Shown in pieces: positions 5,408 through 39,558 of a DNA stretch of 40,562 bases. The position numbers were made by a program, and so were the translations under genes. Where the stretch lies: assembly GCA_900088475.1 (NCBI GenBank), contig FLMG01002852.1:1-40562 (forward strand). Direction: 5' to 3'. The notes beneath the pieces were generated by a model. The model worked only from the letters and a program-made list of their open reading frames with translations. It was not told the DNA's origin and searched no databases. This DNA comes from Hyphochytrium catenoides (lineage: Eukaryota; Protista; Hyphochytriomycota). Position 1 is the first letter of the stretch, and every line of letters starts with the position of its first letter.

Positions 5408-5444
<37 letters not shown>

Positions 5445-10439: not shown

Positions 10440-11873
<1,434 letters not shown>

Positions 11874-12608
11874 TAAGAGGTGAAGATTGGTCCCAAGAGC
11901 TCTAGCCGGCCTAAAGAGAACTCTGTTAGTAGGAAAGCAGCTAGCTAAATATTCTCCTTGATGGCAAAGAGCTCGCAACGCTCCCAGAGCCCAGGTGTTC
12001 CCATTGCCCCAGCTTCTGTTACACCTGTATAGAGAAGTCTTTCAAAGCCGTACTGCATTGCCACCTAGGTTACAATACACGGCTTTCTCAAGCCCAATGC
12101 AGCTTGCTTCCGCTGTCGCATGTGCCTTTTGCCTGCATGGGCACCATTCTTCTTCTTGCCGCTCTGCTAGCCTCGGCAACTGAATGAGACCGCGCGATGC
12201 GTTGACACCTTGCCCGTTCACACGCGGTCTCCCAATACTCCCAAAACCAAAAATCAAGTAATCACAGCCAATCTCTATTCAATAACCAGTTTTACTGATT
12301 CTGGTGCTGATCTCTATGGTTGCGAACCAATCAAAGGGCAAAGGAGCTTTGGGCGTTATGTTGGGAAGAAGCAGCAGCATCAGGAGCAGCGATGAAGAGC
12401 CATGCGGAAGGCGTTCTGATGGGAGCTTCTGAAGCAAGGCGCAAGCAAGCTTCAGAACCGCAGCTTCCTGACCTTCTACTGCAGAGGACGGGTTGGCCAG
12501 GGTCTCAACTGTGGGAGACTCTTCTCCTTATTGCCGACCGCTCACGGGGGTTTGCTTGGTCTAAAAGAAGCGTGGCTCGTGTGAGAGCACAGTGATATTT
12601 AAAGGACC

Positions 12609-14521: not shown

Positions 14522-14562
<41 letters not shown>

Positions 14563-17494: not shown

Positions 17495-18358
17495 TTAGCC
17501 CTTGAAAATAGATACAGCGACGGCATCTCTCCTCTCCTGTCCATCCGAGCATTCCATTGTCGCTTCCAACAGCTGTGTCTCATAGAGTGGGCTCGACTTG
17601 ATGTACTCGGCATAAGCTGGCGCCCCAGGCATAATAATATTATCTGCTACGACAACGGAGCCTTGACGTAGGAGCTTCTTCTCTTCAATAAGTTTTAGGT
17701 CTGGCAGATACAGATCCTTCATATGGTCTATAAAGAAGAAGTCGACGTGTTTGATTCCGTTCCGCTCTCTCACAGCATCAATGCGCTCGGAGAAGGATCC
17801 GACAATGACAGTCACCTTATCCCTCAGTCCAGCAAGCTCAACGACTTTGGTGGCTATCGCAGCATGCAGGGGATCGACCTCAAAAGAGAAGAAATGTGCT
17901 TCAGGATCATTGCGAATCCAGCGAGCGAAACGGACTGCACTGTAGCCGCAGAAGGCGCCAAGCTCCATCATCACTTTGGGATGGTGATTTTGAACCACCT
18001 CGTCCAGCAAACCGCCCTTTGCGGAGCCAACGTGCATCATGGTAGCGTGTTTATGATTAAACTCGTCCATAACTTGCACCACTGAGTCTGCGTCTCCCTC
18101 TGTTGCATGCTGGAAGACATAGTGAAGAAGTTTCTGAATATTCTCGAGTCTCTCTTGTGCGTTCATTCTTCGTCTGCGGGGAGCGGTAACTTGGCCGCTA
18201 GTTGAGTCGTTCGGGTTGTTCGATGGCTTCTGACTGCTGCTGGTGTTTCGACTGAACTGTGAGACGGAGGGAAGTTTGAGTAATGAGCAGGATTGATGGG
18301 GGAGTCTGGCCCGAGATAGGTGCAGCCAGGGCCTACGAAGCAGACTAGTCCTCATCAT
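17495..18358 (-). CDS. COMT: Catechol O-methyltransferase family protein, intronless, with putative mitochondrial presequence
   Basis: 287-aa ORF with MHVGSAKG, MELGAFCGYSAVR (SAM-binding), FIDHMKDLYLPDL and VVADNIIMPGAPAY motifs of the COMT family. The first ~50 aa are R/L/S-rich with no D/E. Confidence 0.88.
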   Translation of the reverse strand: MMRTSLLRRPWLHLSRARLPHQSCSLLKLPSVSQFSRNTSSSQKPSNNPNDSTSGQVTAPRRRRMNAQERLENIQKLLHYVFQHATEGDADSVVQVMDEFNHKHATMMHVGSAKGGLLDEVVQNHHPKVMMELGAFCGYSAVRFARWIRNDPEAHFFSFEVDPLHAAIATKVVELAGLRDKVTVIVGSFSERIDAVRERNGIKHVDFFFIDHMKDLYLPDLKLIEEKKLLRQGSVVVADNIIMPGAPAYAEYIKSSPLYETQLLEATMECSDGQERRDAVAVSIFKG

Positions 18359-20671
18359 TCTTCCTCTGGCTGACTACGAGCCACCATACTCCGCTGAGGA
18401 GAGGAGCAGATTAGTGTTGCCTTAACACCGGCTGGCCCGCAAGCTCATCAGCTCGCCTTCGAACGAAGGATCTAGCACATGGAAGAACGTTCATGTCTTA
18501 CATGCACTTCCAGCTTTGCAGCGGCGATAGCTCACTCACCGCCGTCTGCATCTTTCTCGATGGTCGTTTTGGAGATCCACACCTGCAGCAGTGCCCGTAG
18601 CTGACATCTCAACATTACTATTTTCTGACAATTTAGCGTCCAGCTCTTATATTCGTAGCGACCAGGTTATCACAAGGGTGATGAATAGCTAATATTTCGG
18701 CACAATCACCCTTGTCAACTTACTAAACTCGTAGATCCCCTATCAGATCCGGCTAGTGATAAGGTTGTGAAGCTGAGGACGGAGGAAAATCAGGTGAAAG
18801 GGAGAATCAGGCTTCCCGGCAGGCACCAAGCCTGCATCAGAACATTAGGCCTGCGCCCATCTCTGTCGCCCTGTCCATCCTACCTCTTCCTCTCCTGCAT
18901 CTCTCTAGCCTTTGCCCACCTCTCTCTCTCTCTTTCTCTAGCTCTGTCTCCTCTTCTTTCTTCTCTCTTTCTTACCCCTCTTTCTCTGCCGCTACTAGGG
19001 TTAGCTTGAGGTTTTGCAGACCGCCTATTTGGCCATTGTATTGACGGTTTGCTGCGCTCTCCTCCTCGGCCGCTATTATTGTGGCACCCTGTGCCTTACT
19101 TGCTCTTCATGCAGCTCCATGCGACAGCTTCAGTCGCCTGTGCGACAAGTGTGCGACCTTTGGGGCCATAGGGAAAACTCTTTCATCATATAGAAACTGG
19201 AGTTGGAGCTTGCTCCGTGGTAACGTTGGTCAAACAAGGCACACGCCTGGTTTCTATAACACACCATGCAGCTTGGTGAAGCTCTCGAGACGCTTAGTCC
19301 CAATGCTTTGTCCTCAGTAGAGAGTGATTGTCTGCCGGTGTAATTAAGCCGTTTTATATAACGGGGGAAAGCAGGCTACCGGTCATAAGTCATAATCCGC
19401 ACCGCAAAAGGCCTGGACAAGAGGTAACCTCCCATTAATCCCCTGCGGGAGTGGAGGACTTTGTAGGCTCCGAATAGTGATGCTGCAGCATTTACCGCAT
19501 ATAGTGTCATCACCGATGATGCCGCTGACACACATGCGGGCGCCGTAAACTCGTCACAGCAGATCGGAGGTGCATTGAAGAAACACCAAGAGTGGTACTT
19601 CTTGCCATTGCATGAAGCTTACTGCTTCAAATTGAGGACGTAGGAGGTCCTACTCCATCTGCCACAAGAGACCGTGGGTCTCTTTAAGATTTTGGTGATG
19701 GTAAGAGACTATATGCTATCTTCAGTGACCCCAAAGCGACGACACCCAGACCTGCTGTCAAGGTTCGACATTTTACGAAGCTTTACTGCGGCATCACTCA
19801 CGATACATGATGCGACAAGTGAGCCGGATGGTTTAAAGTTTGACCGAGGCCTTTGAATCAGAGGTAATTGCTATATGATGAGAGTCATGGCTGCGGGCTG
19901 ACCTCAGCGGCCACCACGCACTCATACTAGATCTTAAAAAAGCTAAGTGGAATATATGGTGCGTCCGTCCGTAACGTGGTAAAAGAGTTCACGTGGGCGG
20001 CTGGGCTGATCGCTCTTACCAAGTCCCCCCGGTAGTTGTAAGCATCAGGGAGAAGAATTGCGTTTAAGGAGCAACAGCGGACAAACGCGCAAGGATTACT
20101 CAGAGATGCAAGACGAGAGAGAGAGATGTTGGTTTTAGATCTTATGACTAACTAATAAGATGCGGCTATAGATCTGTGCCTTTATGACTCACTTGTAAGA
20201 TGTACTGCTGCGGATAATTGGTGTCTTGCTGATGATGCTCTAGTGGTACAATTTATATCAAGGGGAAAGCAGTGCTCGTGCGGAAGTGCTGTCTCATCCA
20301 CTCTCTCCGAAAAAGGTCCGTCTCAAGAGGTTTGCTCCATAGCAGCTGATAGGCCAACAACGATGATTAAGTATTTAGAGCTATAGTAGCAGAAGGGACG
20401 ACGAGGTGTAGAGGAGAGGAGAAGGGTCGGTGACGTGAGGATGACTCGGGTTGCACGTCTCTCCGTTCTCTGCTTGATGGGAGTGTAACGGATCTGCTGA
20501 GACTGTCTCCTAATTGAAAGGTTTAGATTTCAAGTCTTTCAAAGCGGAGGTCTGTTACGTTATACAAGGTCTAATTTATTCCTTCATGATAATTTCCTCG
20601 CTAGGAAATGTATCCATCAGCAAGGGCTGTTACTGTCGCTGAAGAAGTTTGGCCTGTGTGGCTGTTTCCCT

Positions 20672-20757
20672 GCCTTCCTTCTCCCTCCCCCCCCCTCTCT
20701 CTCTGGCTGTCTCTCTCTCTCTCTGTCTCCCTCTCTCTTTCTCTCTTTCTTTCTTTC
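20672..20757. repeat. CT-rich microsatellite abutting an assembly gap
   Basis: Direct reading of the sequence. Confidence 0.85.
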
Positions 20758-21348: not shown

Positions 21349-23541
21349 ATGGGTAAGACCAAGTCTCTGCCGTTGCCGGCAGGTGGTCTCCATCATGAAG
21401 ACTCAGGGGTCGGTAGCCGTTGCAGGAGCTTGAAGAAATGGTTTTCTCGAGCCAGCCCAAAGCAGCTCTTGGTCATTGGGTGTGGCGCGTTTCTTCTTGT
21501 AGGAGTCATCGTTGCCGTCGCCGTGAGCCTTGCACTATCGCTACGCAATGGACCAGGCAGCAGCAATAATGGAGGCATTGGGTTGGGCAACGGAAGTACC
21601 GGTACGGCCGATATTAACCTACCCAGAGGCTTATATCACGTCTCTACCATTGCCGGGTCAGGGGTTTTGTTCAGCGAGGTTAAAGATCTGGATGCAGACC
21701 CTGTCTCGGGCGTTGTGTACGTGGCTGACAGCGGGAACAACTGTGTGAGGAAGATCCTGCCGGATGGCTCTGTCTCCACTTTCGTGGGCGATGGCTTGGG
21801 CTCTTTTGCCGCTGGACTCTCATCCTCCGCGCTCAGTAACACTCTGAGTCTTACAGTGGAGAACACGGGTAACGTTTATATCTCTGCCGCACATCGAGTC
21901 TTGAAAATAACGGCCGAAGGCTCAGTATCACTTCTAGCTGGAAGTAGTGAAGCCGGGTATCAGGATGGCGAAGGCGCCGCGGCATCTTTCTCCAACCCCG
22001 CTGGGCTGGCTGTGGACACTGCAGGGAACATCTATGTGGCTGACATGTACAACCATCGCATTCGCAAGATAACTGGCACAGGTGTCGTCAGTACACTTGC
22101 TGGAAGTGGCTCGGCTAGTAAGGCGGACGGCACTGGGGTGTCAGCTGCGTTCCACTCTCCCTCCGGAGTCACTGTGGGCCTGGATGGGACTGTATATGTG
22201 GCGGACACAATGAACTATCGTATCTGTAAGATCTCTCCTAGTGGAGTTGTCAGTACTCTTGCTGGAGGCAGTGTAGACCAGAGCTACCGAGATGGGGACG
22301 GAGCGGCGGCTGAGTTCTACTATCCCTCTGACGTTACCCTAGATTCCAGCGGCAACATATACGTGACAGACGGCTTTGAGATTGCCTATCGCGTCCGGAA
22401 AGTCACGCCGTTGGGTGTAGTCACCACTCTAGCTGGTAGCGGTCGGGCAGAGTTTGCAGAGGGGAATGGGATAGCAGCATCCTTCAATCACTTGACCGCC
22501 ATCGCGTTTGACAGTAAAAGTAACATGCTTCTGGTGGCTGACGCGGAAAACAGACGGATACGCAAGGTCTCTCTTGCTGGAGAAGTTGGCACTTTCGCAG
22601 GTAGTGGCGTTGCAGGCTATGTGGATGGCACGGGTCTCTCCTCTGTGTTTGCTATGCCCGTGGCCACCACTGTTGATAGCAGCCACAATATTTATGTGGC
22701 TGATTTATCCCACCATCGCATTGCGAAGGTAACGCCCTCTGGGATCATCAGCACAGTGGCGGGCGGAGACGGAAACAGCAGTCTAATGGAGCCAGAGGGC
22801 GTCGCTGTGGACGCTGCCGGGGTACTCTACATTGCAGATACAGCGAATCATCGGATTAGGAAAGTTACCCCTGATGGTATTGTCAGCACATTGTTGGGCC
22901 AGAGTAAGCTGGATGATAGCTCTATTCGTACCTCCTCCTGTACCGACGAGCCTGTGGGCATCGCCGTTGACACCAACGGCACCATCTACATAGCAGACAG
23001 GGGAGCCAACCGCATCTGTGAGCTTCTACCTAGCGGTGCGGTCAACATTCTAGCAGGGGTCAGTGGCAATCCGGGGCATAGGGATGGGAAGGCTCTAGAT
23101 GCCTACTTTTGGCGCCCGCACGGTCTAGCGTTGGACAAAGCTGGTAATATCTACGTCGCGGACGCGGACAACAATTGCATTAGAGTGATAACCGCTGACA
23201 GACACAATGTTATCACACTTGCGGGGAAGTGCGTCCAAGGTTACGCAGACGGCCCCGCCTCTAGCGCAATGTTCCGCTATCCTAAGGGTATCGCCGTGGA
23301 CGCCAGTGGGATTGTCTTTGTGGCGGACTCTGGAAACAACAGGATAAGAAGAATCCTGCCAAATGGGACTGTGGACACGATTGCGGGTAGCGGGAGGTTT
23401 CTATATAAGGACGGCGAAAGCTTAGCGGCATCCTTTACTTCACCATCCGGACTTGCTTTATCGGCCGAGGGACAAATCATTGTGGCCGAAGAGTGGAGCT
23501 CGAGGATCAGAAAGCTGACCTTCGTTGCTGGTGGACCATAG
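21349..23541 (+). CDS. Type II single-pass membrane protein with 12 NHL repeats (probable double six-bladed beta-propeller), intronless
   Basis: 730-aa ORF with one hydrophobic segment at aa ~40-65, then 12 repeats of the pattern DG.G..A.F..P.G(I/L/V)AVD..GNIYVAD..N.RIRKI...G.V.T(L/I)AG. Confidence 0.92.
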   Translation: MGKTKSLPLPAGGLHHEDSGVGSRCRSLKKWFSRASPKQLLVIGCGAFLLVGVIVAVAVSLALSLRNGPGSSNNGGIGLGNGSTGTADINLPRGLYHVSTIAGSGVLFSEVKDLDADPVSGVVYVADSGNNCVRKILPDGSVSTFVGDGLGSFAAGLSSSALSNTLSLTVENTGNVYISAAHRVLKITAEGSVSLLAGSSEAGYQDGEGAAASFSNPAGLAVDTAGNIYVADMYNHRIRKITGTGVVSTLAGSGSASKADGTGVSAAFHSPSGVTVGLDGTVYVADTMNYRICKISPSGVVSTLAGGSVDQSYRDGDGAAAEFYYPSDVTLDSSGNIYVTDGFEIAYRVRKVTPLGVVTTLAGSGRAEFAEGNGIAASFNHLTAIAFDSKSNMLLVADAENRRIRKVSLAGEVGTFAGSGVAGYVDGTGLSSVFAMPVATTVDSSHNIYVADLSHHRIAKVTPSGIISTVAGGDGNSSLMEPEGVAVDAAGVLYIADTANHRIRKVTPDGIVSTLLGQSKLDDSSIRTSSCTDEPVGIAVDTNGTIYIADRGANRICELLPSGAVNILAGVSGNPGHRDGKALDAYFWRPHGLALDKAGNIYVADADNNCIRVITADRHNVITLAGKCVQGYADGPASSAMFRYPKGIAVDASGIVFVADSGNNRIRRILPNGTVDTIAGSGRFLYKDGESLAASFTSPSGLALSAEGQIIVAEEWSSRIRKLTFVAGGP

Positions 23542-25160: not shown

Positions 25161-25610
25161 CTACTTTCTTAGGTTGGTCTTGCCCGTTGGAGCCTCACTG
25201 ACATCGCTTCTCTCAATGACAGCGTCAGCAGGTGCTTCAGGAGCCTCCTCCAGATCAGCGCGGCGGCCACCAGGAGGTCCATAGCCCATGGCAAAGTGAG
25301 CAGACCACTCGTACGTGTCACACTTCGCCGCACCGAAGTTGTTTCTGGCTGCGTTGGACAAGCAGAACTTACAGCGGTCAATGCCCTCGTTCGGGTTGCT
25401 CCACGCTTGGCCCCAAGTCCAGATCTGGCGGTTGCCAAAGATTCCGTTATACCATCCCCAAGTATTCTCCACGGTGTTTATGACGGCCTGCTGATCGGCC
25501 CCATATAATGTATTTGGGTTCCACTTGCTGCAGTCGGTGGAGCCTGCCTCAGCGCTGACGGCGAATGCAGCAGCTATGGCAAGAACGATGGCTGAACTGG
25601 TGGTCTTCAT
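25161..25610 (-). CDS. Small secreted Trp-rich 4-Cys prepro-protein, copy A (149 aa)
   Basis: Signal peptide MKTTSSAIVLAIAAAFAVSAEA, ~90-aa domain conserved in four copies, acidic tail. The ORF is intact while the flanks have diverged. Confidence 0.9.
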   Translation of the reverse strand: MKTTSSAIVLAIAAAFAVSAEAGSTDCSKWNPNTLYGADQQAVINTVENTWGWYNGIFGNRQIWTWGQAWSNPNEGIDRCKFCLSNAARNNFGAAKCDTYEWSAHFAMGYGPPGGRRADLEEAPEAPADAVIERSDVSEAPTGKTNLRK

Positions 25611-27079
25611 GGTGCCTTGTGGTGGATAGCGTAGGAGCTATGCGTTGGTTAGAGGTGCTTGCGGGGTAGCTTCTTGGTGAAGTCCTTCTGGTGGTTTCTT
25701 TATGGCTGATCCGAGGAAAGTTTGACAATGAGGTAATGCTGTGATGGTGATCGAGGGGCACCTCGCCGATATCAATTCATGGCCATGATTGAGGCGCATT
25801 CTCTTCTTCCCCTTCTGCCTTCTTACATCGATGCAGGGGGTAGTGATTTACTGCACGAGATATATATGGGATGGTGATATGATGAGTTATCCAGAGAGAC
25901 GAGGCGATCATAGAGGTCATCTGTTTGCCCCTTCATGACATTGAGAAGAAGAGCACAGCATCATCGGCCATTGAACCCGGCATGACAACCCTATCATACA
26001 CCTTCTCTTCGGCTTTGTGACGAGCCCAGCAGACGATAGGAGTTCTAGTGAGAATTGGAGCTTGGTGTGAGAAATGTGGTGTTCCATGGTATTTGGTGCG
26101 TAAGATTTACTCTTCTCCTGCCAGGGCAATGATAACTTGTTTCCAGGCTCGCTCAGCTAGAAGTAGAAGTCTAGGATTTCTCTAATGTAGAAGTATTGGC
26201 ACGGCCGCAAGGTTTCCTTGTTGTGTCGTCAAGTCCGTCTCCCCTGCTGATGACCTGCTCTTTGTCACTTCTAAAATCTAGTCCTAGGGTTGGCTGGTCT
26301 CGTAGTTCTGTACTAAGACTTTATATTACTGTTATAATATGGGTTGGTGGTGAATTATGATCATGACGATTGATGCGTCGTGACTACTTCTTTAAAATCT
26401 CTGCTGACCTTTTCGAGAGTGATGTTCTTTCGTCGCGTGAAAGAAATCCATGCTCATGTGAATTGTGACAGGCGACAGCCAGTAGTTCTACGGGTGACCA
26501 ACACAAAGAAGCAAGCAGACCACCAAACAGACAATGGATAAGGCAACGCTTCCGGGCGCGCGCTCTCTATTTTGTATGTTGTTGACTTTTGGCTTCGTGT
26601 TCGTCCTTCTTTTCCTCTGGACGGAAACAAGAGACAAAGAACCTCTAGAGCTTCCGTTGGAGCCAGGCCGACAGCTATAGGCCATAGGAACAGACTTACT
26701 AGTTCTACAGTTGTTCTTCTACTACCGTTTTAGCCGCTGCTACTTCGAGAGACACATCAAATTACCCACAGCCACATGCTTATTGGCCACAGCCTGTCTC
26801 GAGTCGCTAATCACAAGGTAGCGAGGGACCTTCACCTTTACCCTTTCTATGACAATCACTCATCAGGATAAATCTTAACTCAGGATAGACCTACGCGAGA
26901 TTCGGTCAGAACTACTTCCTTCCTTCCATCATCATAGAAGACATTTTTTTAGTGTTTCCTAGTAACAGGCCGAAGAATCTAGGACAAGCGAGGTGTAGAC
27001 GGTCTTTCTCTTGGGTTACATGTAGCAATTTACACATGAACATGCATGTTGCAATGCACTATCGCACATACATATCTTT

Positions 27080-27900
27080 TTGAGTGGCCGATCTGTCTGA
27101 ATGTCACGAAGCGAAGATAGCGTTTTTGGGGTCTTTATTAGCACAGCGGTAGGCTCTACACTATTGCAGATACAGCGGACTATGTTTCAGAAAAGTTACT
27201 TCTGACGGCACTGTGAAGACGTTGTTGGGCCGGAGCAAGGTCTTCCTGATAGTTCTGGATCTTTCTCATAGGTCTTTCGATGCCTCCTTCTGTCCTGAAA
27301 GAGGCTGTGGGCATCGCCCTCAACACTAGCGGCAATATCTATGTAGCAGAGCCAACCGGATCTGTGAGCTCCTACTTAGCGGTGCGGTCATCATCCTGGC
27401 TGTTGTCAGTGGCATGGCTATTGTCAGTGGCATTCACAGCAGGATCATGGAAAGGCTCCAAATGCCTACCTTTGGCGCCGTCAGGATCTGGCGTTGGACA
27501 AATGTGGCAAGAAAGTTCTTTACGCACGCAGGCCACAATAGCTGCACCACAAGGATCACAGCTAATAGACAATACCTGTCCTCACAAATGCCCAGAAGAA
27601 TGTCAGAGGTCACGGCCACGGCACCGCCACGTGGGCAACGCTTCGCTACTCTGATACCCCACGAGTATCACCATACACGCAAATAATAAGAAGCATATAT
27701 TATCGTGACAACTGGGTTAAATAGGATAAGGAGGATCCCCTCTATGATACTGCAAAAACGATTGCGGATTCCTATCATTTCCTGGGTACAGCGACCGCTT
27801 GGCGGCATCCCTAACTTCACCACCCAGACTGCCCGTTTCCTCCGAGGGAAGCATCGCTGTGGCCGAAGAGTGTCTCAAAGATCAGGAAGCTGACATATGT
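27080..27900 (+). pseudogene. Decayed 3' portion of the NHL-repeat gene (copy 2)
   Basis: Colinear similarity to ~22690-23541, e.g. ttgcagatacagcg, ctgtgggcatcgcc, atctgtgagct.ctac.tagcggtgcggtca, tgtggccgaagagtg, gatcag.aagctgac. Broken by many frameshifts and stops; the 5' limit is uncertain. Confidence 0.85.
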
Positions 27901-28606
27901 CAGTGAACCAAATAAAGAAAAAAGCAGCGTGTTCCCCATGGGTTGGAGAGTTCAGCAATGAACGTCCAAAATCTGCAGTAACAACAGGGGGCATCTTCGA
28001 CTGACGAGAAAGACGAACAGAAAGAGTAGATAGAAAAAGAGTACAGGGGAGAGTAAGAAGCCTGCGTGGGAGGCTGTTTGGAGTTGTCCCTCTGTTATGA
28101 GAGCCCTCTTAGACAACAGAAAGAGTGGTGCGCTATCAAGCTTCTGCGATTCATGACGAATGAACTACTTAACTTGTTTGTTATCTTGTTGAAAGTTTAG
28201 ATGTAGATTTGCATCATTGTCGTACTCTCCATCGCCTAGAGAAAATCACACTTCAGCGACCGCGGCATATGCGCATAGGTGGTGTCTTCTGACACCTATC
28301 GCTGTGCCGGTTGACACTAGACAAACAAGACGAAGATGCAGGCTAACCCAAGGAGGAAGGGCGGGCTGCTGCTGGCATGATGCATGATCCTGGGCCGCTG
28401 CAAAGGCTGATATAACTCTTGCGGATAGTAGACTAGTACGTTTACTTTGCGGAGCAAGACATTCTAGAGCAAAAATTCTGTTATGATAAGCCTTTATAAA
28501 AGAGAACGTTTGTTCCAGCTAGGTTACATTCGGCCTTGTTCCCAAAGATCGTTACTGCTACCTGACGGATCCTGATAGATTAGTCCGATAAGTTTGTTTC
28601 TGATGC

Positions 28607-29056
28607 CTAGTTCCTTAGGTTGGTCTTGCCCTTAGGAGCCTCACTGACCTCGCTTCTGTCAACGGCAGCGTCAGCAGGTGCTTCAGGAGCCTCCTCAAGA
28701 TCGGCGCTCCGGCCACCAGAAGGACCATAGCCCATGGCAAAGTGAGCAGACCACTCGTACGTGTCACACTTCGCCGCACCGTAGTTATTCCTAGCCGCGT
28801 TGGACAAGCAAAACTTACAGCGGTCAATGCCCTCGTTCGGGTTGGCCCACGCCTGACCCCAGGTCCAAAATTGACGGTTGCCGAAGATTCCGCTATACCA
28901 TCCCCAGGTATTCTCCGCGGTGTTTATGACGGCCTCCTGATCGGCACCATATAATGTATTAGGGTTCCACTTGCTGCAGTCGGTGGAGCCTGCGTCAGCG
29001 CTGGCGGCGAATGCTGCTGCTACAGCAAGAACGAAGGCTGAACTGGTGGTCTTCAT
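28607..29056 (-). CDS. Small secreted Trp-rich 4-Cys prepro-protein, copy B (149 aa)
   Basis: Paralog of copy A. The true start is taken as the MKTT ATG at 29056, not the longer ORF-track start at 29437. Confidence 0.9.
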   Translation of the reverse strand: MKTTSSAFVLAVAAAFAASADAGSTDCSKWNPNTLYGADQEAVINTAENTWGWYSGIFGNRQFWTWGQAWANPNEGIDRCKFCLSNAARNNYGAAKCDTYEWSAHFAMGYGPSGGRSADLEEAPEAPADAAVDRSEVSEAPKGKTNLRN

Positions 29057-30629
29057 GGTACTTGTGGGTGGTGGATAGCGTAGGAGCTGTGTGTTTGTTG
29101 GAGGTGCTTGTGAGGTAGCTTCTTGGTGATATGAGGTCCTTCTGGAGGTTTTGTGTCTGATTTGAGGAAAGTTTGATAATGAAGCAACCCTGTGATGGTG
29201 ACCCGGGCACCTCGCCGACATCAATTCATGGCCATGATTGAGGTGCACTCTCTTCTTCCCCTTCTTCCTTCTTACATCGATGAAGGGGGTAGTGCGTGGC
29301 TTACTGCATAATAAACTTATTAGGATGGTGAAGAAGTTATCCAGAGAGACGATCCCATCATTGTGGTAGTCTGTTTGCCCTTCATGACAATGCGAAGAAG
29401 AATACCGCATCTTCGGCCATTGAGCCTGGCATGACAACCCCTATACACCTCCTCTTCGGCTTTTTATTGTGACGAGCCCAGCAGACAATAGGAGTTCTGA
29501 CGACAAATGGAGCGTGGTGTGAGAAAGGTCTTGTTCCATGGTATTTGGTCCTTGATCTCACTCTTCTCCTGCCAAGGCAATGACAACTTGGTTCCAGTGT
29601 GCCAGGCCCGCTCACCCAGAAGTCTTTTTGTTTAGTATAAATGTAAACAGGGCAAGAACCACGGCACTGATAAAGATTGACACGGCCGCAATACTTCATG
29701 GTTGTGTCGTGGATTCCGTCTCTTCTTCTGATGACCTGCTCTCTGCACTTCTAGTCTTTAGTCCTATGGCTGGCTGATCTAGATTATACTTCGATTTATT
29801 ACTGTTATCTGGCTGATGGATGAAGAGTGATGACGACGCGTCGTAACTATTTCTTTCTCTTATTAGTTGACCATTTCGAGAGTGATGTTCTTTTGTCGGG
29901 GTAAAAAAATCCGGCTAATGTGAGTCGTGAGAGGCGACAGGGAGTACTGGCGGCCGCGGCCCACACTAAGAAATAGAAAACTAGACAGACAATGAATAAT
30001 CAAGGCTCTGTTTCCGGGAGCATCAATTTCCTCCCTCCTAGTTGGTGCCTGTTATTCGTTTTTTGCTTCGCATTCTATCCGCTATTCTATGTACGGAAAG
30101 TCGAAACGACTATGACGGCATGATAGCTCTCCTATCTTTCCGTAAACTAGAGTGGTAAAATGGGAACAATCGCAACCAACGATGTACTTTTCCCGGCTGA
30201 TCATCATTCGAGGTTGCTACTGTTTTAGTCTGGTGCTACTCTGAGACAGCCAAACTACCACCAGATGCTTACTAGTCACAGCCTGTCTCAAGTCTCTACT
30301 CACAAGGTAGCGAGGAGCCTTCCCATGATGAACTTCCATCCTTTCAATGACAATCACTCATCACTCATCAGGCTAGAAGCTTTGACTTCCACCTTTCCAC
30401 ATAGCTTTTTCGGGGCTTTGCTCTCGTTCTAATAAAATGACCCGACAATCCCATTTCATGCATAATGTAACTCACAATCCAGAGTAGAACTATGAGAACT
30501 ACTTCCTTCCTTTCACCACTACAGAAGACAGTACCGATGACGGTTCAGGATAAAGCGAGGTTCTATCGGACTGCAATCGTCCACCCAAACATGCATCGTT
30601 GCAATGCACTATCGCACAATGTAGATACT

Positions 30630-31525
30630 AAGTTGAGTGCCCGATCTATCTCACAGTCGCAAAGAGAAGATAACAGCCTTGGGAGTCACTATTAACAGAG
30701 CGCTTGGTGGATGGTATCACCATTCTAATGGTGCTCTGCATGGTTGCCGATACAACGGACTGGCACTTCAGGAAAATCACTTCTGATGGTACGGTCAAGA
30801 AGTTTGTTGGCCGGAGTTAGAAGTTAGCAATAGCTCTTTCGATGCCTTTCCTCTCCTAAAGAGCCTGTGGGCATCGGCCTTGACATCAAGGGCAATCTAC
30901 GTAGCAGATGGGGAAGCCCACTGATCTGCGAGCTCTTCCCGTTTGCCGTGGTCAACATCATCTTGACCGGTGTCAGTGGCAATCACGGGCATATTCTTGG
31001 GTCAGTGACAATCACGGGCATTATAGTAGGATGATGGAAAGGTTCAAGATGCCTACCTCTGGCGCCCCCGTGGGTCTAGCGCTGAACAAACCTGGCAAGA
31101 TCTACGTCAGGGACCGCGGACGCAGATAACAGCAAGTGAAAGAGAGACACCACAGCTGATAGACACACTGTGCTCACAATTGCCGGAAAATGCGTCAGAG
31201 ATCACGCCGATGACACCGCCTCAGTGCATTGTCCCACTACCCCTAAACCCACTAAACCCTTGTGGTGCCGTAGACGCCAATACGGAAGTTTTCTGTCGTG
31301 GAGGCTGGGGTATAACAGGATAAGAAGATTCTATCGCCCAATGATATTGCGGAGGCCTGGTCGCCAATATCTTGTGATCATCCTAGTTGAACGCCGGTAT
31401 CTTGTGATCATAGTTGAAGTACAGAGACCGTTTGTCGCATCCCTAACGCCACCACCCGGACTGGCTTTATCTTCCGACGTAAACAACGCTGTCGGCGAAT
31501 TCTCAAGGATCAGGCGCAGCTGATC
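30630..31525 (+). pseudogene. Decayed 3' portion of the NHL-repeat gene (copy 3)
   Basis: Colinear similarity to the NHL gene 3' end (gagcctgtgggcatcg, gtcagtggcaatc, gatgcctac.t.tggcgccc, ggtctagcg). Residual peptides VGLALNKPGKIYV, LTIAGKCV, YNRIRR, ASLTPPPGLALS; frameshifted. Confidence 0.85.
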
Positions 31526-32827
31526 TTTGCTTGTAAAAATAAAGATAAAGAAAAATAGCAGCTGTGGCCCATGCGTTGGAAAGTAAGCAATGAAAGTCCG
31601 AAAGAGCGCAGAATTCTGACAAACGTGAAACAACAGGGGCGTGTTTGACTGACAAGAAAGACGGACAGAAGGATCGATTAGCAGGGGAGAGTAAGAAGAA
31701 TGAGTGAGAGGCTATTAAACTGCAAAGATAGCCCCCTCAGCCAACAACAGTGTTGGTGCGCAGTCAGCCTTCTTCTAGGACTAAAGGCGAACAATTCAAG
31801 TGCAACCACTTTTTTTATATCACGGAGGTTTAGATGAAGATTTGCATCATACTCTTCCTGTTCTTGTTAGAGCAAATCACACTTCAATGACTCTCGCATA
31901 TGAGCAAGATCGCAACAGCTGCTTTCTTTTTTGGTTGACGTCTCCACACAAACAAGGCTTAGATGATGCCTGCTGACGCTAGGATAGGCGGGCAGCGGAC
32001 ATGAAGTCTGTCTGGCTTAGGGCTAGGGTTAGTTACAAAGGCTGATATACTCTTGCAGATCGTAGACTAATTCGTAGTTGGGGGTAAGACAGCAGAATGG
32101 AGGACATGGAAGCCCCCACTACTCGCACTAACGTTAAGCACCAGCGGCAACTACCTACTGCCAGTAGATGGCAAGCGATAAGAAGATTGGACAAAGAAGC
32201 AAGAGAATGCCGACGGATGCCACACTTCTCCTACACCAAGCAGCACTAAAGGAGATAATAGGAGTGCAGTTAGACATCACCAGTGGAGGTCATAGGGTGT
32301 TCGCTGCCTACTTTTTTCATGAACAAAATCCACGTTCAATAAGGAGCTTTATAGTTGCTGCCACCAGCTTTCTCACTATGTCCACGAGCAAAATGGGTGC
32401 AAACTTCCCTGCTTACCTACGTTATCATTATGAGAGTAAGGTATCGTAGAGCTGGTTACCGTGCCGTCTAGACTTATCCTCGTTCTCTTCACACCATCAT
32501 CTCCGCTGTCGCAAATATTCGGAAGCAATGGTGATGGAACACTGGATAGGGAAGTAAGCCGATATCTAAACTCTCTTCTATTCGAGTCTGTCTCCTCCTT
32601 CTCGTCGCTCGCTCTCTTTTCCAACTTGGATAGTTGCTGCCAGATATAGTCCTGACGCTTTCCACGACCAACTGATGGTAATAGGTTCGAGAGCAAATAT
32701 CTATTACTAGCTTTTTTATAAAAAGAAAACGTTTCTGGCTCAAGGTACACTGGGCCTTGCTACCAAAACTAGTTGACTGCTACCTGGCAGGCTTTGATAA
32801 AATTATACCAGCAAATGCGTGTAGTGC

Positions 32828-33280
32828 TTAGTTCCTTAGGTTGGTCTTGCCCTTAGGAGCCTCACTGACCTCGCTTCTTTCAACGACGGCGTCAGTTGGT
32901 GCTTCAGGAGCCTCCTCAGCATCGGCGCTGCGGCCACCAGGAGGTCCATAACCCATGGCAAAGTGAGCAGACCACTCGTACGTGTCACACTTCGCCGCAC
33001 CGTAGTTGTTTCTGGCTGCGTTGGACAAGCAGAACCTACAGCGGTCAATGCCCTCGTTCGGGTTGCTCCACGCCTGGCCCCAGGTCCAGATCTGGCGGTT
33101 GCCGAAGATTCCGCTATACCATCCCCAGGTATTCTCCACGGTGTTTATGACGGCCTGCTGATCGGCGCCATATAATGTATTAGGGTTCCACTTGCTGCAG
33201 TCGGTGGAGCCTGCCTCAGCGCTGGCGGCGAATGCTGCAGCTGCTACAGCAAGAACGATGGCTGAACTGTTGGTCTTCAT
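32828..33280 (-). CDS. Small secreted Trp-rich 4-Cys prepro-protein, copy C (150 aa)
   Basis: Paralog of copy A; start taken at the MKTN ATG at 33280. Confidence 0.9.
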   Translation of the reverse strand: MKTNSSAIVLAVAAAAFAASAEAGSTDCSKWNPNTLYGADQQAVINTVENTWGWYSGIFGNRQIWTWGQAWSNPNEGIDRCRFCLSNAARNNYGAAKCDTYEWSAHFAMGYGPPGGRSADAEEAPEAPTDAVVERSEVSEAPKGKTNLRN

Positions 33281-34949
33281 AGTGCTTGTGATGGATAGCT
33301 TAGGAACTGTGTGTTTGTTGGAGGTGCTTGTGAGGTAGCTTCTTGGTGAAGTTCTTCTGATAATTTCTTTGTGTTTGGTCCGAGGTAAGTTTGATAATGA
33401 GGCAACCCTGTGATGGTGATCGAGGGGCATTTCGCCGATACCAATTGGTGGTGATGATCGAGGCGCATTCTCTTCTTCCCCTTCTTCCTTCTACTTTGGT
33501 TGCAGGAGGAGGTAGTAGGAGCGTATATAATAGTTCTAGTTGCAAAACTATTGAGGGAGAGGATGTCATCGCCGTCGTCATCATCTGCTTAGATACCCTG
33601 ACCATTGCACCAAGAAGGGTATGGCCAGTGTGAAATCGTGCTGGCAAAACGATCAAACCCATTCAAGACCTACTCGTCGGCTAATTTTCAGTGGAGCTTC
33701 GGGAGAGAAGAGTGATGGTCCGTGATTTTCGGCCGATGGTTTCTTCGTTTCTGACAGTGACCTATGACAAATTCTGGTATCTTTGAAGAAGAAGTCCATT
33801 TGTTATGCTGGTAAGAAAGGAGAAAGGACCTACACCGATAAACGACAGGGTCTCGGTGTTTCGTCATCGTTGTCATGGGTTTGTCTGTCTATCTACCTGA
33901 TGATCTGCTCTTCGTGGCACATCTCGTAGACCTACAGCGGGCTGACAGATCACCTAAGCAAGACCTTATGGGTGGCTGATGGATGACGACGATGACGACT
34001 GCTGTGGTGATGTCCTGTCGTCAGTTGAAAGAAATGCAGGCTAGTATAAGGTGTGACAGGCGGCAAACCTGTAGTCCTGACCTAAAGGAAGCAACAGAAG
34101 AGGAACTAAACGGTCTGGGTAGAGTACTAGATCTACCTCTCTCCGATCGGGTGTCCCATACTATTTTCCTATTGGTATTTGGCTTCGGTTCTTCTATCGT
34201 CTTATGATAAAGCGTAGAAGGACTACAGCATGACCACCTGATAGCGCTCCTCATATCTTGGTTCGGACTACTATACACCGATACCGACCAATTGCAGTGG
34301 CGCGAATCAATAGTACTTATTCCGTCTAGCGTTTAGTTGATGGAATGTTTCCGGTTGTCTGTCTCTGGAGGCATGAAGATAGACTACTAACTTGATGACC
34401 TTGTGAAACTCCTAGAACTGTACTACTGTTTTAGTCCGCTACACTTCGACACATAGCCACACTACTAACGGCACGTGCTAGCTTATTTACCTACAATCCC
34501 TCTCTAGTATGAGACTTTCACATGGTAATCCTCCATCCTTGCGGTGACAATCACTCTCTGCCTTCTGCGCAGCGTCGGCGGTATCATTATTCCTAGAAGT
34601 GATATGCCAGTCCAAAACTGACTTCGAATCGAATTAGTAGTTCTTTCTACCACCAAAGAACATTATTCTTCTTCTGCCTAGTCTTTCCCTTTATGAGAGA
34701 GCCCACCACATAATCGTGAAGGTGGAAGAGGAAGGTCTTCAAGTACTTCACGATGCGCGTGGTATGCCGAACGCGCACGTTGCGCAGAATTAGTGCATGG
34801 ACTATGTGAAGATCTGCTCTAGCACGGAAAAAGGAAGAGGAAACAAAAGAAGGCTCAGGATAAAATAAGAGCATGACCAAAACACGACTCTTTCTGACCT
34901 CTCTGGGACTGAATGTAGAAGGGTGTAGGTGCTGGACTCGCCATTGTGC

Positions 34950-36440
34950 TATTTTGAGACGATCATCGCATAGAACTACCATCGCTGTGCACAGTTGGAA
35001 AACCATGGATAGGATGACGGAAGGAGGAGGAGGTTCCACAACTGGCGACAAGGTCCCCAGACAATAGCTGTTTCAAGTGGAGGTGCTTTCCAGGACTAAA
35101 GACCGTGCTGGGCCATAGTAGGGCGGGTGCATCACAGTGGCCGACCGAAGAAAAAGGGTTTTTGAACTCTGTCCTCCCTTGTGATTTACCAGGCATCGCT
35201 GCAGAGTAACAAAACCCGCAGATCAGTGCTGTACGTTCTCTAGAACATCTGTCTACCTCTATCGCAGAATCCGTTGATTTTGGAAAGTAGTTCTACATTG
35301 GCTCGTTCTAGTAGTATCAAGATTCGAGATCTCTGTAGTTGCCTGTAACGCAGCTAGTTCTACGAGAAGGGACTCTTGGAACAGCTGTGCATGACCTTCC
35401 TATCTTGACTCGGGCACGTTTCCTTCCTCTGAAAGTGCCGAGAACTACGCCTTTTTTTGTTGAGCGAAAGATGTGTTTCCGAGTTGATGATGACGAAAGA
35501 CTGAATCGGGACGGTCTCTTGCCGAGCGCTCGCTGACAACCAAGTCCTACTAGAAACTGAATGTTTGTCCACATCCATTGCCACTTCTGGGACAACGGAT
35601 AAACGACGATTCGCATGTCGCGAACTTGGAGGGAGGACTGGCAGTAACTTCCAGCAAGAGCAATGCTAAGCGTAGTTCTCGGTTGTAGGTAGTGATACAA
35701 GTGTACCGGCCTTTCTCGAGGCATAAATACTCATTAGAAATGGACTTGTTTAAGAAGTTGCCTTCTTCTACTGCTTTATTCTTCTAACAGTTGCGTGAAT
35801 AGGAGGGCAGTTACTTAGATCTACTACGACCGGCACGAGCCAGATCGGTACTCGGAGGTTTATGATGTTATTTTCTATGAAGAGACTTTCCTTGGAACTA
35901 CTAGAAGGAGACATGAGGGTAGTGAAGAATTTTAAGGTAAAACGGTACCCGAGAAAGAGAGAGTAAGAGGAGGAGGTCACCCAACTGTGCACTGTGCATC
36001 TGCATTGATTGTACAAGTCGAACTACCTCTTACCTCCAAGATTTTGGGGATGACCAGCGGTTATCAAGGGCTTGTCAACCTTCATTATCATCGTGGTATC
36101 CACCCAGGAACATCATTCTTCTGGGCATCAAAGGTTCCCATTGCACCTGCTACTGATTACAGAAACTTAGAAGTACATCATCACCATAACGCTATGAGTT
36201 CGAGGGAAAAGTTGCAACCTATAATGACAACGGTAGATCGTAAAGAGTAAAGAATCAACTTCTGGCTGTCGTTCTACCACCAAGCAAATCTTCTGTGAGG
36301 AGCTCCTTGACACGTCCCTGTCGCCCTTTTTGTTTCTGCTGCGTAGCCTCCGTGAATGTCTGCGTAGCCCACATTCATGGCCTGCCGAAATAGAAGTCAA
36401 TAGAATAGTTGAAGGTCGCCATCAAGATACCAAGATTGAC
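34950..36440 (-). mobile_element. Possible highly decayed retroelement pol (DIRS/Ngaro-like RT-RNaseH-methylase order)
   Basis: Scattered degenerate motifs in plausible order on the minus strand: WYLDGD (~36425), MFLG..DTTM (~36110), TYNREL (~35685), NKKA*FS (~35455), DA..LLWP (~35130), PPPSVIL (~35030). No continuous ORF. Confidence 0.3.
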
Positions 36441-36617
36441 TTTTTGTTTGTTATTGGCCGCCAGGAAGCCAGAAGACGAGGGTGGTGATGGTGGCGTGCA
36501 ATCGACTATGCTTTAGTTACACCCCACACACGCTACCTCGGTCTTTCCAGCAAAGAAGGTTAACGCACAGGTGGGCCTTTCACCATGATCTGGTCGTCAA
36601 TCAACAGTAAAAGGTTG

Positions 36618-36636
36618 GCTCATTATCAAGCTTTCC
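36618..36636 (+). promoter_or_regulatory. Putative initiator-like core promoter motif of the secreted gene family
   Basis: gctcattatcaagctttcc ~110-130 bp upstream of the ATG. Equivalents on the minus strand at 25715-25733, 29166-29184 and 33384-33402. Resembles the oomycete INR+FPR element (TCATT...TTT.C). Confidence 0.45.
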
Positions 36637-36745
36637 TCCAACCAACCACAAGGAGCCCAAGAAGCGCAAAGCACTTCACCCGGAAGCTAGCTCACCGGCA
36701 ACAGGAAAACACCCCACAGCTCCTACGCTATCCATCAGAAGTACC

Positions 36746-37198
36746 ATGAAGACCAACAGTTCAGCCATCGTTCTTGCTCTGGCAGTAGCATTCGCCGCCA
36801 GCGCTGAGGCAGGCTCCACCGACTGCAGCAAGTGGAACCCAAATACCTTATATGGCGCCGATCAGGAGGCCGTCATAGGCACCGTGGAAAATACCTGGGG
36901 ATGGTATAATGGAATCTGGGGCAACCGCCAGATCTGGACTTGGGGCCAGGCGTGGAGCAACCCGAACGAGGGCATTGACCGCTGTAAGTTCTGCTTATCC
37001 AACGCAGCCAGAAACAACTACGGTGCGGCGAAATGTGACACGTACGAGTGGTCTGCTCACTTTGCCATGGGCTATGGACCTTCTGGTGGCCGCAGCGCGG
37101 ATCTCAACGAGGCTCCTGAATCACCAGCTGACGCTGTTGTTGAAAGAAGCGAAGTCAATGAGGCTCCTAAGACCAAGAAGACCAGTTTGAGATATTAG
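36746..37198 (+). CDS. Small secreted Trp-rich 4-Cys prepro-protein, copy D (150 aa, inverted)
   Basis: Paralog of copies A-C on the opposite strand; intact ORF with ~150 bp of homologous 5' flank. Confidence 0.9.
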   Translation: MKTNSSAIVLALAVAFAASAEAGSTDCSKWNPNTLYGADQEAVIGTVENTWGWYNGIWGNRQIWTWGQAWSNPNEGIDRCKFCLSNAARNNYGAAKCDTYEWSAHFAMGYGPSGGRSADLNEAPESPADAVVERSEVNEAPKTKKTSLRY

Positions 37199-37389: not shown

Positions 37390-38352
37390 AGTCCCTATGT
37401 TTTATAAAGGATTAGTATGCAGCATATTATCTAACTTCGCCGCTTACATACAACCAGTCGCATCCTGTCTTCCATGTCTCGCTGTTGGAGATCTTTCTTC
37501 TATGGAGTCACAAGCAACACACCATAGTCCCTCGCCAGATATGGTCAATGGACGTGAGGAGTTCGACGTAGAAGCTATACTGTGAGATGTAAGGTCACGG
37601 TAAAAGATGAACTAGTCACGAGAAAGTTTTTGCGCTAGTAAATGTGAAGATAGCAACTCGAGCAACTGAGTCTTCGCTAAGCGCGACATGACAGCCTCTT
37701 CTGACCCCGATAAGATTGTATTCTCCGGAGATGAGAAAGGGAGACTGAGAGTCTCCTCTCATTATGCTTTGCATGCAGAAGGAAAGAGTAATAGGTCTTT
37801 CTTAACATAAAGTTCTACTCGTGAAAATGCATCATGAGAGACAACAAGCAAGCAAGATCAAAGGAGCCTGTCGACAAGAGAGGTTAGAAGGGAGAAAGCC
37901 TTCTCTCGTGAAAGCTCTATTACACTTGGACTGCTGACTTGATACTTGCACCTCTTCTGCAAACCTAGGAAGGCTCTCCACATGTCCTTCTATTATTCCC
38001 AGCGTAAATCCTTGTGCGCGTGTGCCAAAGCCAAGCAAGTGAGGCAGCTCCTGCTAGGAACAACTGAATCTCGGTTGCCTATAATAACACTTCGCTTTGT
38101 TAGGTATCAAAATCTTAACCCTTCAAGTGCTAACTAAAAGATGGGCGAGAGACCAAGACTCCGTGGATCAAATGACAGTTTGCATACTCCGTAGATTGTA
38201 TCGATAGAGTCCTCTGACGTTATCTACCTGATCTCCTTGTCGTTAACCATCCGTTAAGCTATAGGGATAAGGATGAGCTGTATCTCCATTTCCGACAAAT
38301 ATCTGTTGAAGTGGAAGGGTTACCTCGACGTGATGCTTCTTGGGAGCCAGAA
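37390..38352 (+). mobile_element. Relic of Ty3/Gypsy chromovirus integrase C-terminus (GPY/F domain plus interrupted chromodomain)
   Basis: Frameshifted motifs in order: SPYV (37390), AYYL (37422), HPVFHVSLLE (37461-37490), PSPDMVNGREEFDVEAI (~37530-37579), then after ~680 bp KYLLKWKGY / PRRDASWEPE (38297-38352). Confidence 0.8.
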
Positions 38353-39181
38353 GCTATGGACAATCATGCGGACAATCTGTTCACAAACTTTTGGCAAAGC
38401 AGAGAACCAACAATTCCTCGTTCTGTTTCACGACGCCGCTCCAGAGGACGTAGGAAGCTTACTTAGAAGTAGAGAGTTTAAGGAGAAACCTCCTCCTTAC
38501 GCAAACACGTTCTCTTCTTCTAGAGTTAATAATGCTCATATCATAGTATTTCCTCCTAGCTAGTGACAGTCGTTACCCATACAAGAAGCATGCTCATTCA
38601 CGCTCCCGACCGCTGTCCATCAGACCACTATTTTTCAACAATTTGCCCAGCGACCAGCAACAAGTCCCAACAAAATCAACGAACCGAACACTCAAAAATG
38701 CCAAGCAAGGGCTATCACCATTGGCTCCTTTGAAACTGACTGAAGTCCAGCTCTTCCCTATTGATGGTATCAAGAACCTCTACAGAGCCATGTGGTGTTG
38801 GAACATGTGGGATTCTCACACCAGGAATACGGTGATCAATGGGGCAACAAGCTTACAGGCATTGACTGGCAGCCAGCAGTATAGATGTCACAAGATTCAT
38901 GCCACAAATGCTCATCGTATGATTACATTGGCGATTAAACGTGCCTCAGAGGTACTCTAGACCAGTGAACTAGGATATATTTGACCACATTCGTAGTTGT
39001 TCTTCTCTTCTCCTTCTTTATCTGCTTGCATCTATGATATTCTTCTTACTCCTAGTAACTCTTTATGAAGTAGGTACCATGAGTAGGACTCTTAGGTATA
39101 GGGACAGTGAGGTTACCATTATCCTTCACTGCTCACTCCACTAATTACAATGACATCAACAACAGTTGTGTCACACCATTG

Positions 39182-39558
39182 TTACTAGCAAAACCTTCGC
39201 TTACTCTGTGCACTCGCTCCTCTTCTTAAGAACCTTACTGTTCTTACATGTGGTTATCTGATGACAGGGGCGGGATAAAGCATCTTTGGAAAGTGGAAGT
39301 ATGGTTATGCCAACTACGGAGCAGGGTACAGTACAACATCGATCCTACTACTACCACTACCGTTTCATCTCTTACTAGTTAGCAAGAACCTTCGCTTCTT
39401 ACTCTGTGCACTCGCTTCGTAAGAACCTTACCGTCCTTATTACATGTGGTTAGATGATGACAGGGGCGGGATCAAGCATCTTTGGAACGTGGAAGAAGTA
39501 TGATGGTTTGCGCACTACCGAACAGGGTACAGTACGTCCATCCCACTACCGTTTCATC
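39182..39558. repeat. Imperfect direct tandem repeat, two copies of ~187 bp
   Basis: 39182-39369 and 39372-39558 share ttactag..aaccttcgctt..actctgtgcactcgct..aagaaccttac..ttacatgtggtta..tgatgacaggggcgggat.aagcatctttggaa.gtggaag..cagggtacagtac..ccactaccgtttcatc. Confidence 0.9.

Follow-up and report, generated by a model that had tools for sequence, protein, structure and literature searches.

Within 12 kb of contig FLMG01002852.1 of Hyphochytrium catenoides, four similar genes code for a small protein with a secretory-type N-terminus, and the locus raises the question of what this protein is and why it was retained four times. The whole stretch analysed (40,562 nt, hereafter the window) is eukaryotic, gene-dense sequence with 48.8% G+C. 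The reading favoured here, to which a probability of about 45% is assigned, is that the four genes represent a sequence family which is new but has the sandwich fold of DUF26, KP4 and lectin proteins, and whose members would be secreted and would bind glycan- or chitin-bearing surfaces, probably for defence.

Four copies of a small gene

The four open reading frames (ORFs) are all intact and single-exon, with in-frame stops upstream. Three of them, labelled A to C, lie on the minus strand, and the fourth, D, is inverted with respect to them. Their coordinates are as follows.

25161-25610, minus strand: copy A, 149 aa; signal peptide 25545-25610, 89-aa core 25278-25544, acidic tail and stop 25161-25277
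28607-29056, minus strand: copy B, 149 aa; signal peptide 28991-29056, core 28724-28990, tail and stop 28607-28723
32828-33280, minus strand: copy C, 150 aa; signal peptide 33212-33280, core 32945-33211, tail and stop 32828-32944
36746-37198, plus strand: copy D, 150 aa; signal peptide 36746-36811, core 36812-37078, tail and stop 37079-37198

This arrangement reproduces the description given in an earlier note, made from the sequence alone, of four intact, intronless ORFs of about 150 aa within 12 kb. In each copy, as had been reported there too, the hydrophobic, signal-like N-terminus of 22-23 aa terminates in A-[ED]-A and is followed by the 89-aa core (GSTDC...MGYG) and by an acidic, more variable C-terminal tail. 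The tail measures 38-39 aa, is Pro/Ala/Glu-rich and has a pI of 4.6-5.2. Full-length identity to copy A is 88% for B, 91% for C and 87% for D; in the core, the substitutions with respect to A number 6, 3 and 4, respectively, exactly as counted before, corresponding to identities of 93, 97 and 96%. Every core contains 4 Cys, together with 7 Trp (8 in copy D). The four-copy pattern lies far beyond chance expectation. No fifth copy was found by tblastn within the 40,562 nt of the window; a weak match at 12078-12167 was dismissed as chance after checking.

The 150-210 nt or so preceding the ATG are also conserved in all four copies, with common blocks that include CTCATTATCAAACTTTCCTC and CAGCTCCTACGCTATCCA, and presumably correspond to the 5' untranslated region and the core promoter.

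25611-25823, minus strand: conserved segment upstream of copy A
29057-29272: conserved segment upstream of copy B
33281-33492: conserved segment upstream of copy C
36597-36745: conserved segment upstream of copy D

An A is found at position -3 of the ATG in each of the four. Because this is the conserved start, the 276-aa ORF listed for copy B (from 29437) is regarded as an artefact of read-through from upstream, and so is the longer ORF listed for copy C.

Selection and duplication history

The copies were compared pairwise by the Nei-Gojobori method. Synonymous divergence (dS) between them is 0.19-0.41, with 0.15-0.46 as the widest range of values. The ratio of non-synonymous to synonymous divergence (dN/dS) amounts to 0.18-0.30 overall, falling to 0.08-0.20 when the core is taken by itself and reaching 0.2-0.6 for the tail. 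The core is thus far from the ratio near 1 which the earlier note had held out as evidence against its own proposal, and the excess of synonymous over non-synonymous change in the core is significant by Fisher's test, with p from 1e-8 to 1e-3. By these codon-level measures, copies A to D are functional genes under purifying selection, and, judging from their dS, they are old. The dosage-selected product proposed in the note is at most conceivable.

The history of the cluster can be read from a neighbouring gene, coding for a protein with NHL repeats, whose 3' part was duplicated together with the small gene.

21349-23541, plus strand: intact NHL-repeat gene of 730 aa, convergent with copy A; the protein has a membrane anchor at its N-terminus, and the 3' part of the gene lies within the duplicated unit
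27154-27904, plus strand: decayed NHL 3'-end fragment of unit 1, upstream of copy B on the plus strand; 65.7% nucleotide identity to 22825-23519, with 78 gaps and a broken frame
30637-31517, plus strand: decayed NHL 3'-end fragment of unit 2, before copy C; 67.8% nucleotide identity to 22858-23282, with 66 gaps and matches in several frames

The first of the two decayed fragments contains an 18-nt tandem repeat (27397-27433). The repeat unit, of about 3.4-4.2 kb (in round terms 3.5 kb), is a copy of the 3' third of the NHL gene plus the small gene and its upstream region, while the duplicated part of copy D is limited to the coding sequence and about 130-150 nt upstream. The flanks of the A and B units are 79% identical, with 94 gaps over 1435 columns, and identity falls to 65-68% farther out; the statement of the earlier note that the co-duplicated flanking DNA is full of indels is borne out by these figures. 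The small genes have remained intact at about 90% identity, whereas the NHL fragments of the same units are at 66-68% and have lost their frames. From this contrast, and from the extents of the units, a history may be drawn in which a tandem triplication of the unit gave rise to A, B and C, D being a short inverted copy. The best explanation of the sequences would be that selection preserved the small genes only, and the cluster would offer a clean natural case in which one gene of a duplicated unit was kept four times while the co-duplicated fragment decayed. Informative sites are split 5, 4 and 5 over the three possible copy topologies and so favour no single order of the duplications; some exchange between copies is possible.

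Distant relatives

Neither the four proteins nor their cores match any Pfam family (hmmscan, E up to 10), and no meaningful match was obtained among PDB sequences by using the single proteins, a profile or the 38-aa segment of the predicted second helix as the query. PDB matches to botulinum Hc (E about 1), to a designed TIM-barrel and to a snaclec were attributed to chance or to summed repeats. A word-indexed protein database returned 0 matches to a single-protein query. Three relatives were identified when 1.84 billion cluster representatives were scanned exhaustively with phmmer, and a profile search of the word-indexed database led to the same three.

P0001: 118 aa, 'hypothetical protein CBR_g34994 [Chara braunii]'; E 1.8e-16 library-wide, 42% identity
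P0002: 263 aa, from a Lake Mendota metagenome
P0003: 185 aa, from an ENA metagenome assembly with a scaffold name beginning GROS21; lake metagenome

None of the Pfam, PDB or library searches produced a confident full-length match to a characterised family, in agreement with the earlier view that the protein could be assigned to no named one. The Chara gene is intronless and located on a 1.47-Mb contig of assembly GCA_003427395. It is found at 8001-8357 of the extracted locus (L001, from BFEA01000412) as a single gene; the 8 kb to its left and right contain no second copy. Its mature product contains 8 Cys, against 4 in the window proteins. The two lake-metagenome relatives were detected at E 3e-4 and 6e-4, improving to 1e-41 to 1e-46 with the profile.

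All three relatives have a signal-like N-terminus, and in all three the homologous domain extends to the C-terminus, so that the acidic tail appears to be an addition in the lineage of the window. P0002 carries two Pfam Chitin_bind_1 modules (hevein, CBM18; E 1e-9), and P0003 one (E 8e-5, which does not reach the Pfam cut-off); in these two proteins the hevein module or modules are set apart from the C-terminal homologous domain by a linker rich in Pro and Thr.

Across the seven sequences (four copies and three relatives) 17 positions are invariant. They include all 4 Cys, at core positions 5, 58, 61 and 75, and conserved motifs are seen in a loop, W-x-x-P-x-x-G, in C-x2-C-L and in the terminal A-x-F-x-x-G-Y. 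The 4 Cys and 7 Trp that the earlier note had called invariant are constant in the window copies; family-wide the Cys hold, and only 2 of the 7 Trp do. For this reason the argument that Trp richness suggests glycan or membrane binding is a weak one.

No further relative was found by a first scan of metagenome loci or by a scan of viral contigs. The sole match of a second metagenome scan (L005), a Bacteroidetes-like secreted protein of 309 aa, has only WLSPSDGWY in common with the family and was classified as a false positive. By the measure of these searches, the family is an orphan with an extremely patchy distribution.

Predicted fold

The core was modelled with AlphaFold (AF2) on an alignment of the seven sequences. 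The model has a predicted local distance difference test score (pLDDT) of 80.6 and a predicted template modelling score (pTM) of 0.73; with the four paralogues alone, pLDDT was 40. Its topology is b-a-b-b-a-b-b, with strands at 4-8, 32-36, 39-45, 72-76 and 82-88 and helices at 15-27 and 55-67. When the model was compared with the PDB by Foldseek, ranks 1 to 12 were all occupied by DUF26 ectodomains, ginkbilobin-2 (Gnk2) or Zt-KP4. The relevant matches are listed below, with template modelling (TM) scores relative to the query (TMq) and, where given, the target (TMt).

Ranks 1-4 and 8: PDLP5/PDLP8 DUF26 ectodomains (6gre, 6grf); best E 6.3e-3, probability 1.00; TMq 0.56
Rank 5: ginkbilobin-2 (3a2e); E 0.05; TMq 0.44
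Ranks 6-7, 9-12 and 15: Zymoseptoria effector Zt-KP4 (8acx); E 0.065-0.5; TMq 0.49-0.50
Rank 14: Lyophyllum alpha-galactosyl lectin LDL (4nds); E 0.4; TMq 0.52, TMt 0.50
Rank 38: KP4 (1kpt); E 1.7; TMq 0.39

A Foldseek comparison with viral structure models gave no match. In the literature, the structures retrieved are already treated as a single group: the DUF26 domain consists of two helices on a five-stranded sheet and resembles the fungal lectins LDL and Y3, and PF01657 (DUF26) and PF09044 (KP4) are grouped together as alpha/beta sandwich families. The core is likely, if not proven, to belong to this fold class, as far as the model can tell. The fold itself would then be one already known, and the sequence family probably a new one. 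The earlier guess of a lectin, antimicrobial or effector locus agrees with this predicted fold (DUF26/ginkbilobin-2, Zt-KP4, LDL), as well as with the hevein-bearing relatives.

Proposed function and alternative explanations

In the favoured reading, the locus would comprise four paralogues of a secreted, disulfide-stabilised, single-domain protein, with a core folded as a sandwich of two helices and five strands. The signal peptide would be cut after A-[ED]-A. The four invariant Cys would form two disulfides, one of them probably joining strand 1 to helix 2, as in PDLPs, where the first strand is disulfide-bridged to the second helix. Once exported, the domain would bind a glycan or glycoconjugate on a foreign cell surface, probably a chitin- or mannan-bearing one, and binding would serve defence or competition; the acidic, disordered, lineage-specific tail of 38 aa may act as a spacer or a propeptide. 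The observed footing of this scheme consists of a secretory-type N-terminus, a Cys-stabilised compact domain under strong constraint and, in relatives, chitin-binding modules joined to the same domain. Gnk2 and maize AFP1/2 are antifungal lectins which bind mannose, and by analogy with them, and because of the hevein fusions in the relatives, the most likely target would be the wall of a fungus-like organism.

Several observations weigh against this reading. The connection to the fold comes from a single model, built on a seven-sequence alignment, with modest scores (TM about 0.5, best E 6e-3), and no sequence-level link to the DUF26, KP4 or LDL families emerged from the Pfam and PDB sequence searches. 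DUF26 is marked by a C-8X-C-2X-C motif and by six Cys in three disulfides; the family has four invariant Cys, not six, and the first Cys of the motif is missing, position 49, nine before C58, never being Cys. The core is mildly acidic in all four copies (pI 5.1-5.6). Chitin_bind_1 (PF00187) was not found by Pfam in the four window proteins, nor in the Chara protein. Moreover, no family member was found among the proteins of the Logan assembly SRR24052872, which derives from a related organism (see below) and was covered by the exhaustive search.

The acidity of the core bears also on the antimicrobial option, since membrane-active peptides are typically cationic and this protein is not. The idea of an acidic propeptide attached to a cationic antimicrobial peptide was rejected on the same ground, and that of a Kex2-type dibasic site before the tail because RR is found in copy A only. 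On sequence grounds, the acidic core, the conservation of just 2 Trp family-wide and the lack of a common dibasic site argue against a simple antimicrobial peptide. Plastid targeting via an 'AAAF' motif was likewise discarded, since the conserved domain begins 7 residues on and leaves no room for a transit peptide.

Other explanations share part of the same evidence. The protein could be a killer toxin of the KP4 type, whose secreted domain halts the growth of competitors by blocking an ion channel or other surface protein of theirs, with no carbohydrate binding. Zt-KP4 (8acx, at best TMq 0.50 and E 0.065) and KP4 (1kpt) are among the structural matches, the sandwich fold is common to killer toxins and DUF26, and the protein is small, secreted and, by prediction, disulfide-bonded, with tandemly amplified genes. 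The DUF26 matches, however, outscore those to KP4, no Pfam KP4 match is found, and the core is acidic with 4 Cys only; the hevein fusions in relatives point to a carbohydrate-rich target, though toxin delivery could use them too. On balance, a toxin of this kind seems unlikely. It is improbable that the protein is an effector which a parasitic or pathogenic eukaryote directs at its host so as to manipulate or mask the host surface. Effector repertoires typically contain orphan small secreted proteins that are amplified in tandem, Zt-KP4 is a pathogen effector with the same predicted fold, and the nearest named relatives of the O-methyltransferase encoded at the locus are Phytophthora proteins, at only about 46% identity. 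Effectors, on the other hand, often diversify, whereas here dN/dS is low and the core nearly invariant, and the closest genomic homologue belongs to a free-living alga, Chara braunii, the others coming from lake plankton.

The same strong purifying selection on a core without diversifying change, unlike that of a typical arms-race protein, would suit an endogenous extracellular role, in which the protein helps to form or organise the wall, the matrix or the cell-cell contacts of the organism that makes it. It would then be comparable to plant PDLPs and CRKs, whose ligands may be proteins, and each copy would have a stage or condition of its own. PDLP ectodomains head the structural matches, and no sugar ligand has been found for them; the upstream regions have diverged between copies. 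Yet no receptor or membrane protein is seen among the relatives, which are either secreted on their own or fused to hevein modules, and so patchy a distribution is unusual for a core structural component; this role, too, is considered doubtful. That the ORFs are non-functional relics of segmental duplication would accord with the absence of the family from almost all databases, but this explanation is effectively refuted: all four ORFs are intact, the core retains its low dN/dS at dS values up to 0.46, NHL fragments of the same age lost their frames, and distant homologues keep the same 17 positions, including the 4 Cys.

A rather unlikely extension of the favoured reading, a glycan-binding sandwich protein, concerns its ancestry. 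The single-domain secreted lectin of Charophyceae (CBR_g34994) and of unsampled freshwater eukaryotes might be ancestral to land-plant DUF26 (CRRSPs, PDLPs, CRKs), or share an ancestor with it and with fungal KP4/LDL, possibly with horizontal transfer between freshwater lineages. The family would in that case have two disulfides and, of the DUF26 motif, no more than the C-x2-C half. DUF26 is reported to be land-plant specific and absent from charophytes, and Vaattovaara et al. (2019) noted that an algal proto-DUF26 might be masked by sequence divergence. The family described here supplies a concrete protein that bears on how the very large DUF26 family of plants (CRKs, PDLPs and antifungal CRRSPs) arose. 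If the fold holds, it would be a fourth sequence family beside the DUF26, KP4 and LDL/Y3 secreted sandwich proteins, and the first of this group with a charophyte algal member. The hevein fusions in lake plankton hint, in turn, at unexplored chitin-directed proteins of freshwater microbial eukaryotes, for example in alga-chytrid interactions.

Other features of the window

Other genes and repeats were identified along the window, as listed here.

6440-8452, plus strand: TPR-repeat gene, multi-exon
11170-11876, plus strand: exons of a tyrosine phosphatase of the PFA-DSP/Siw14 type (Pfam Y_phosphatase2), with the catalytic HC-x5-R loop apparently split by an intron
14178-17173, plus strand: SDA1 ribosome-biogenesis gene in several exons; a clear GT-AG intron, about 260 nt long, occupies 16320-16582
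17495-18358, minus strand: catechol-O-methyltransferase-like gene, intact, 287 aa, with nearest named proteins from Phytophthora (about 46%)
37500-38563, plus strand, downstream of copy D: ORF fragments with KYLLKWKGY, ending in ...EEFDVEAIL; candidate remnant of a Ty3/gypsy chromodomain, with no significant Pfam match
39186-39369 and 39380-39558: adjacent direct repeat of about 180 nt, 77.6% identity

The last-exon ORF of SDA1 contains a Leu/Ser/Phe-rich stretch, which may be a further unspliced intron. A Logan contig of 1018 nt (SRR24052872) shows 87% DNA identity to the O-methyltransferase gene over 1012 nt, including short flanks, and because of this match a related organism appears to have been already sequenced. 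Exact look-ups of window proteins in the public gene collection returned no entry, and the lineage would thus be a poorly sampled one. An Rfam search gave no match. Copies of a short purine-rich, low-complexity element (40-75 nt, 74-90% identity) occur throughout the window, in part within acidic coding stretches; examples are found at 20680-20757, 56-112, 2765-2849, 3643-3706, 5396-5468, 14518-14614 and 18915-18973.

Comparison with known systems

The best structural matches make DUF26/Gnk2 (PF01657) the closest term of comparison. Domains of the two groups are similar in size (about 90-110 aa), secreted and disulfide-stabilised, share the predicted architecture of two helices and five strands, and include stand-alone secreted single-domain forms. 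The family's Cys5, in strand 1, and its C58-x2-C61, at the start of helix 2, would fit the bridge between these elements known from PDLPs. The corresponding helix-2 segment of ginkbilobin-2 presumably also reads C-x-x-C-L-S-N, which we take as a lead only. Mannose binding in Gnk2 depends on residues N11, R93 and E104. Unlike DUF26, the four proteins, their cores and the three relatives give no PF01657 match (hmmscan, E up to 10), and none was obtained when the profile was run on PDB sequences, 3a2e, 6gre and 6grf among them. Relatives of the family are found in a charophyte alga and in lake plankton, against the reported land-plant restriction of DUF26, the window proteins have an acidic C-terminal tail and two of the relatives carry fused hevein modules. 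By the defining sequence criteria, hidden Markov model and Cys motif, the family is not a member of DUF26.

KP4 proteins (PF09044, including Zt-KP4) are small secreted alpha/beta sandwiches. They figure among the structural matches of the predicted model, with TMq 0.50 for 8acx and 0.39 for 1kpt, and they serve in microbe-microbe or microbe-host antagonism, as is proposed for the window family. KP4 is a basic protein. The family differs in its acidic core, in its fewer Cys and in the lack of any sequence or HMM match (E up to 10), and by sequence it is not a KP4 family member. LDL (Lyophyllum decastes, 4nds) and Y3 (Coprinus comatus), two basidiomycete lectins, each consist of one domain of about 10 kDa that shows this sandwich fold too, and LDL is matched over its whole length; the likeness is one of predicted fold, at a Foldseek E of only 0.4 and 11% identity, with no sequence relationship.

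Plant defence proteins with hevein modules (class I chitinases and PR-4/hevein precursors) provide a parallel of a different kind. The four window proteins and the Chara protein are without a hevein module, and the C-terminal domain of P0002 and P0003 is neither GH19 nor Barwin; the layout of these two relatives is nevertheless that of the plant proteins, in which the signal peptide is followed by CBM18/hevein modules, one or two in number, and a Pro/Thr linker leads on to a C-terminal effector domain.

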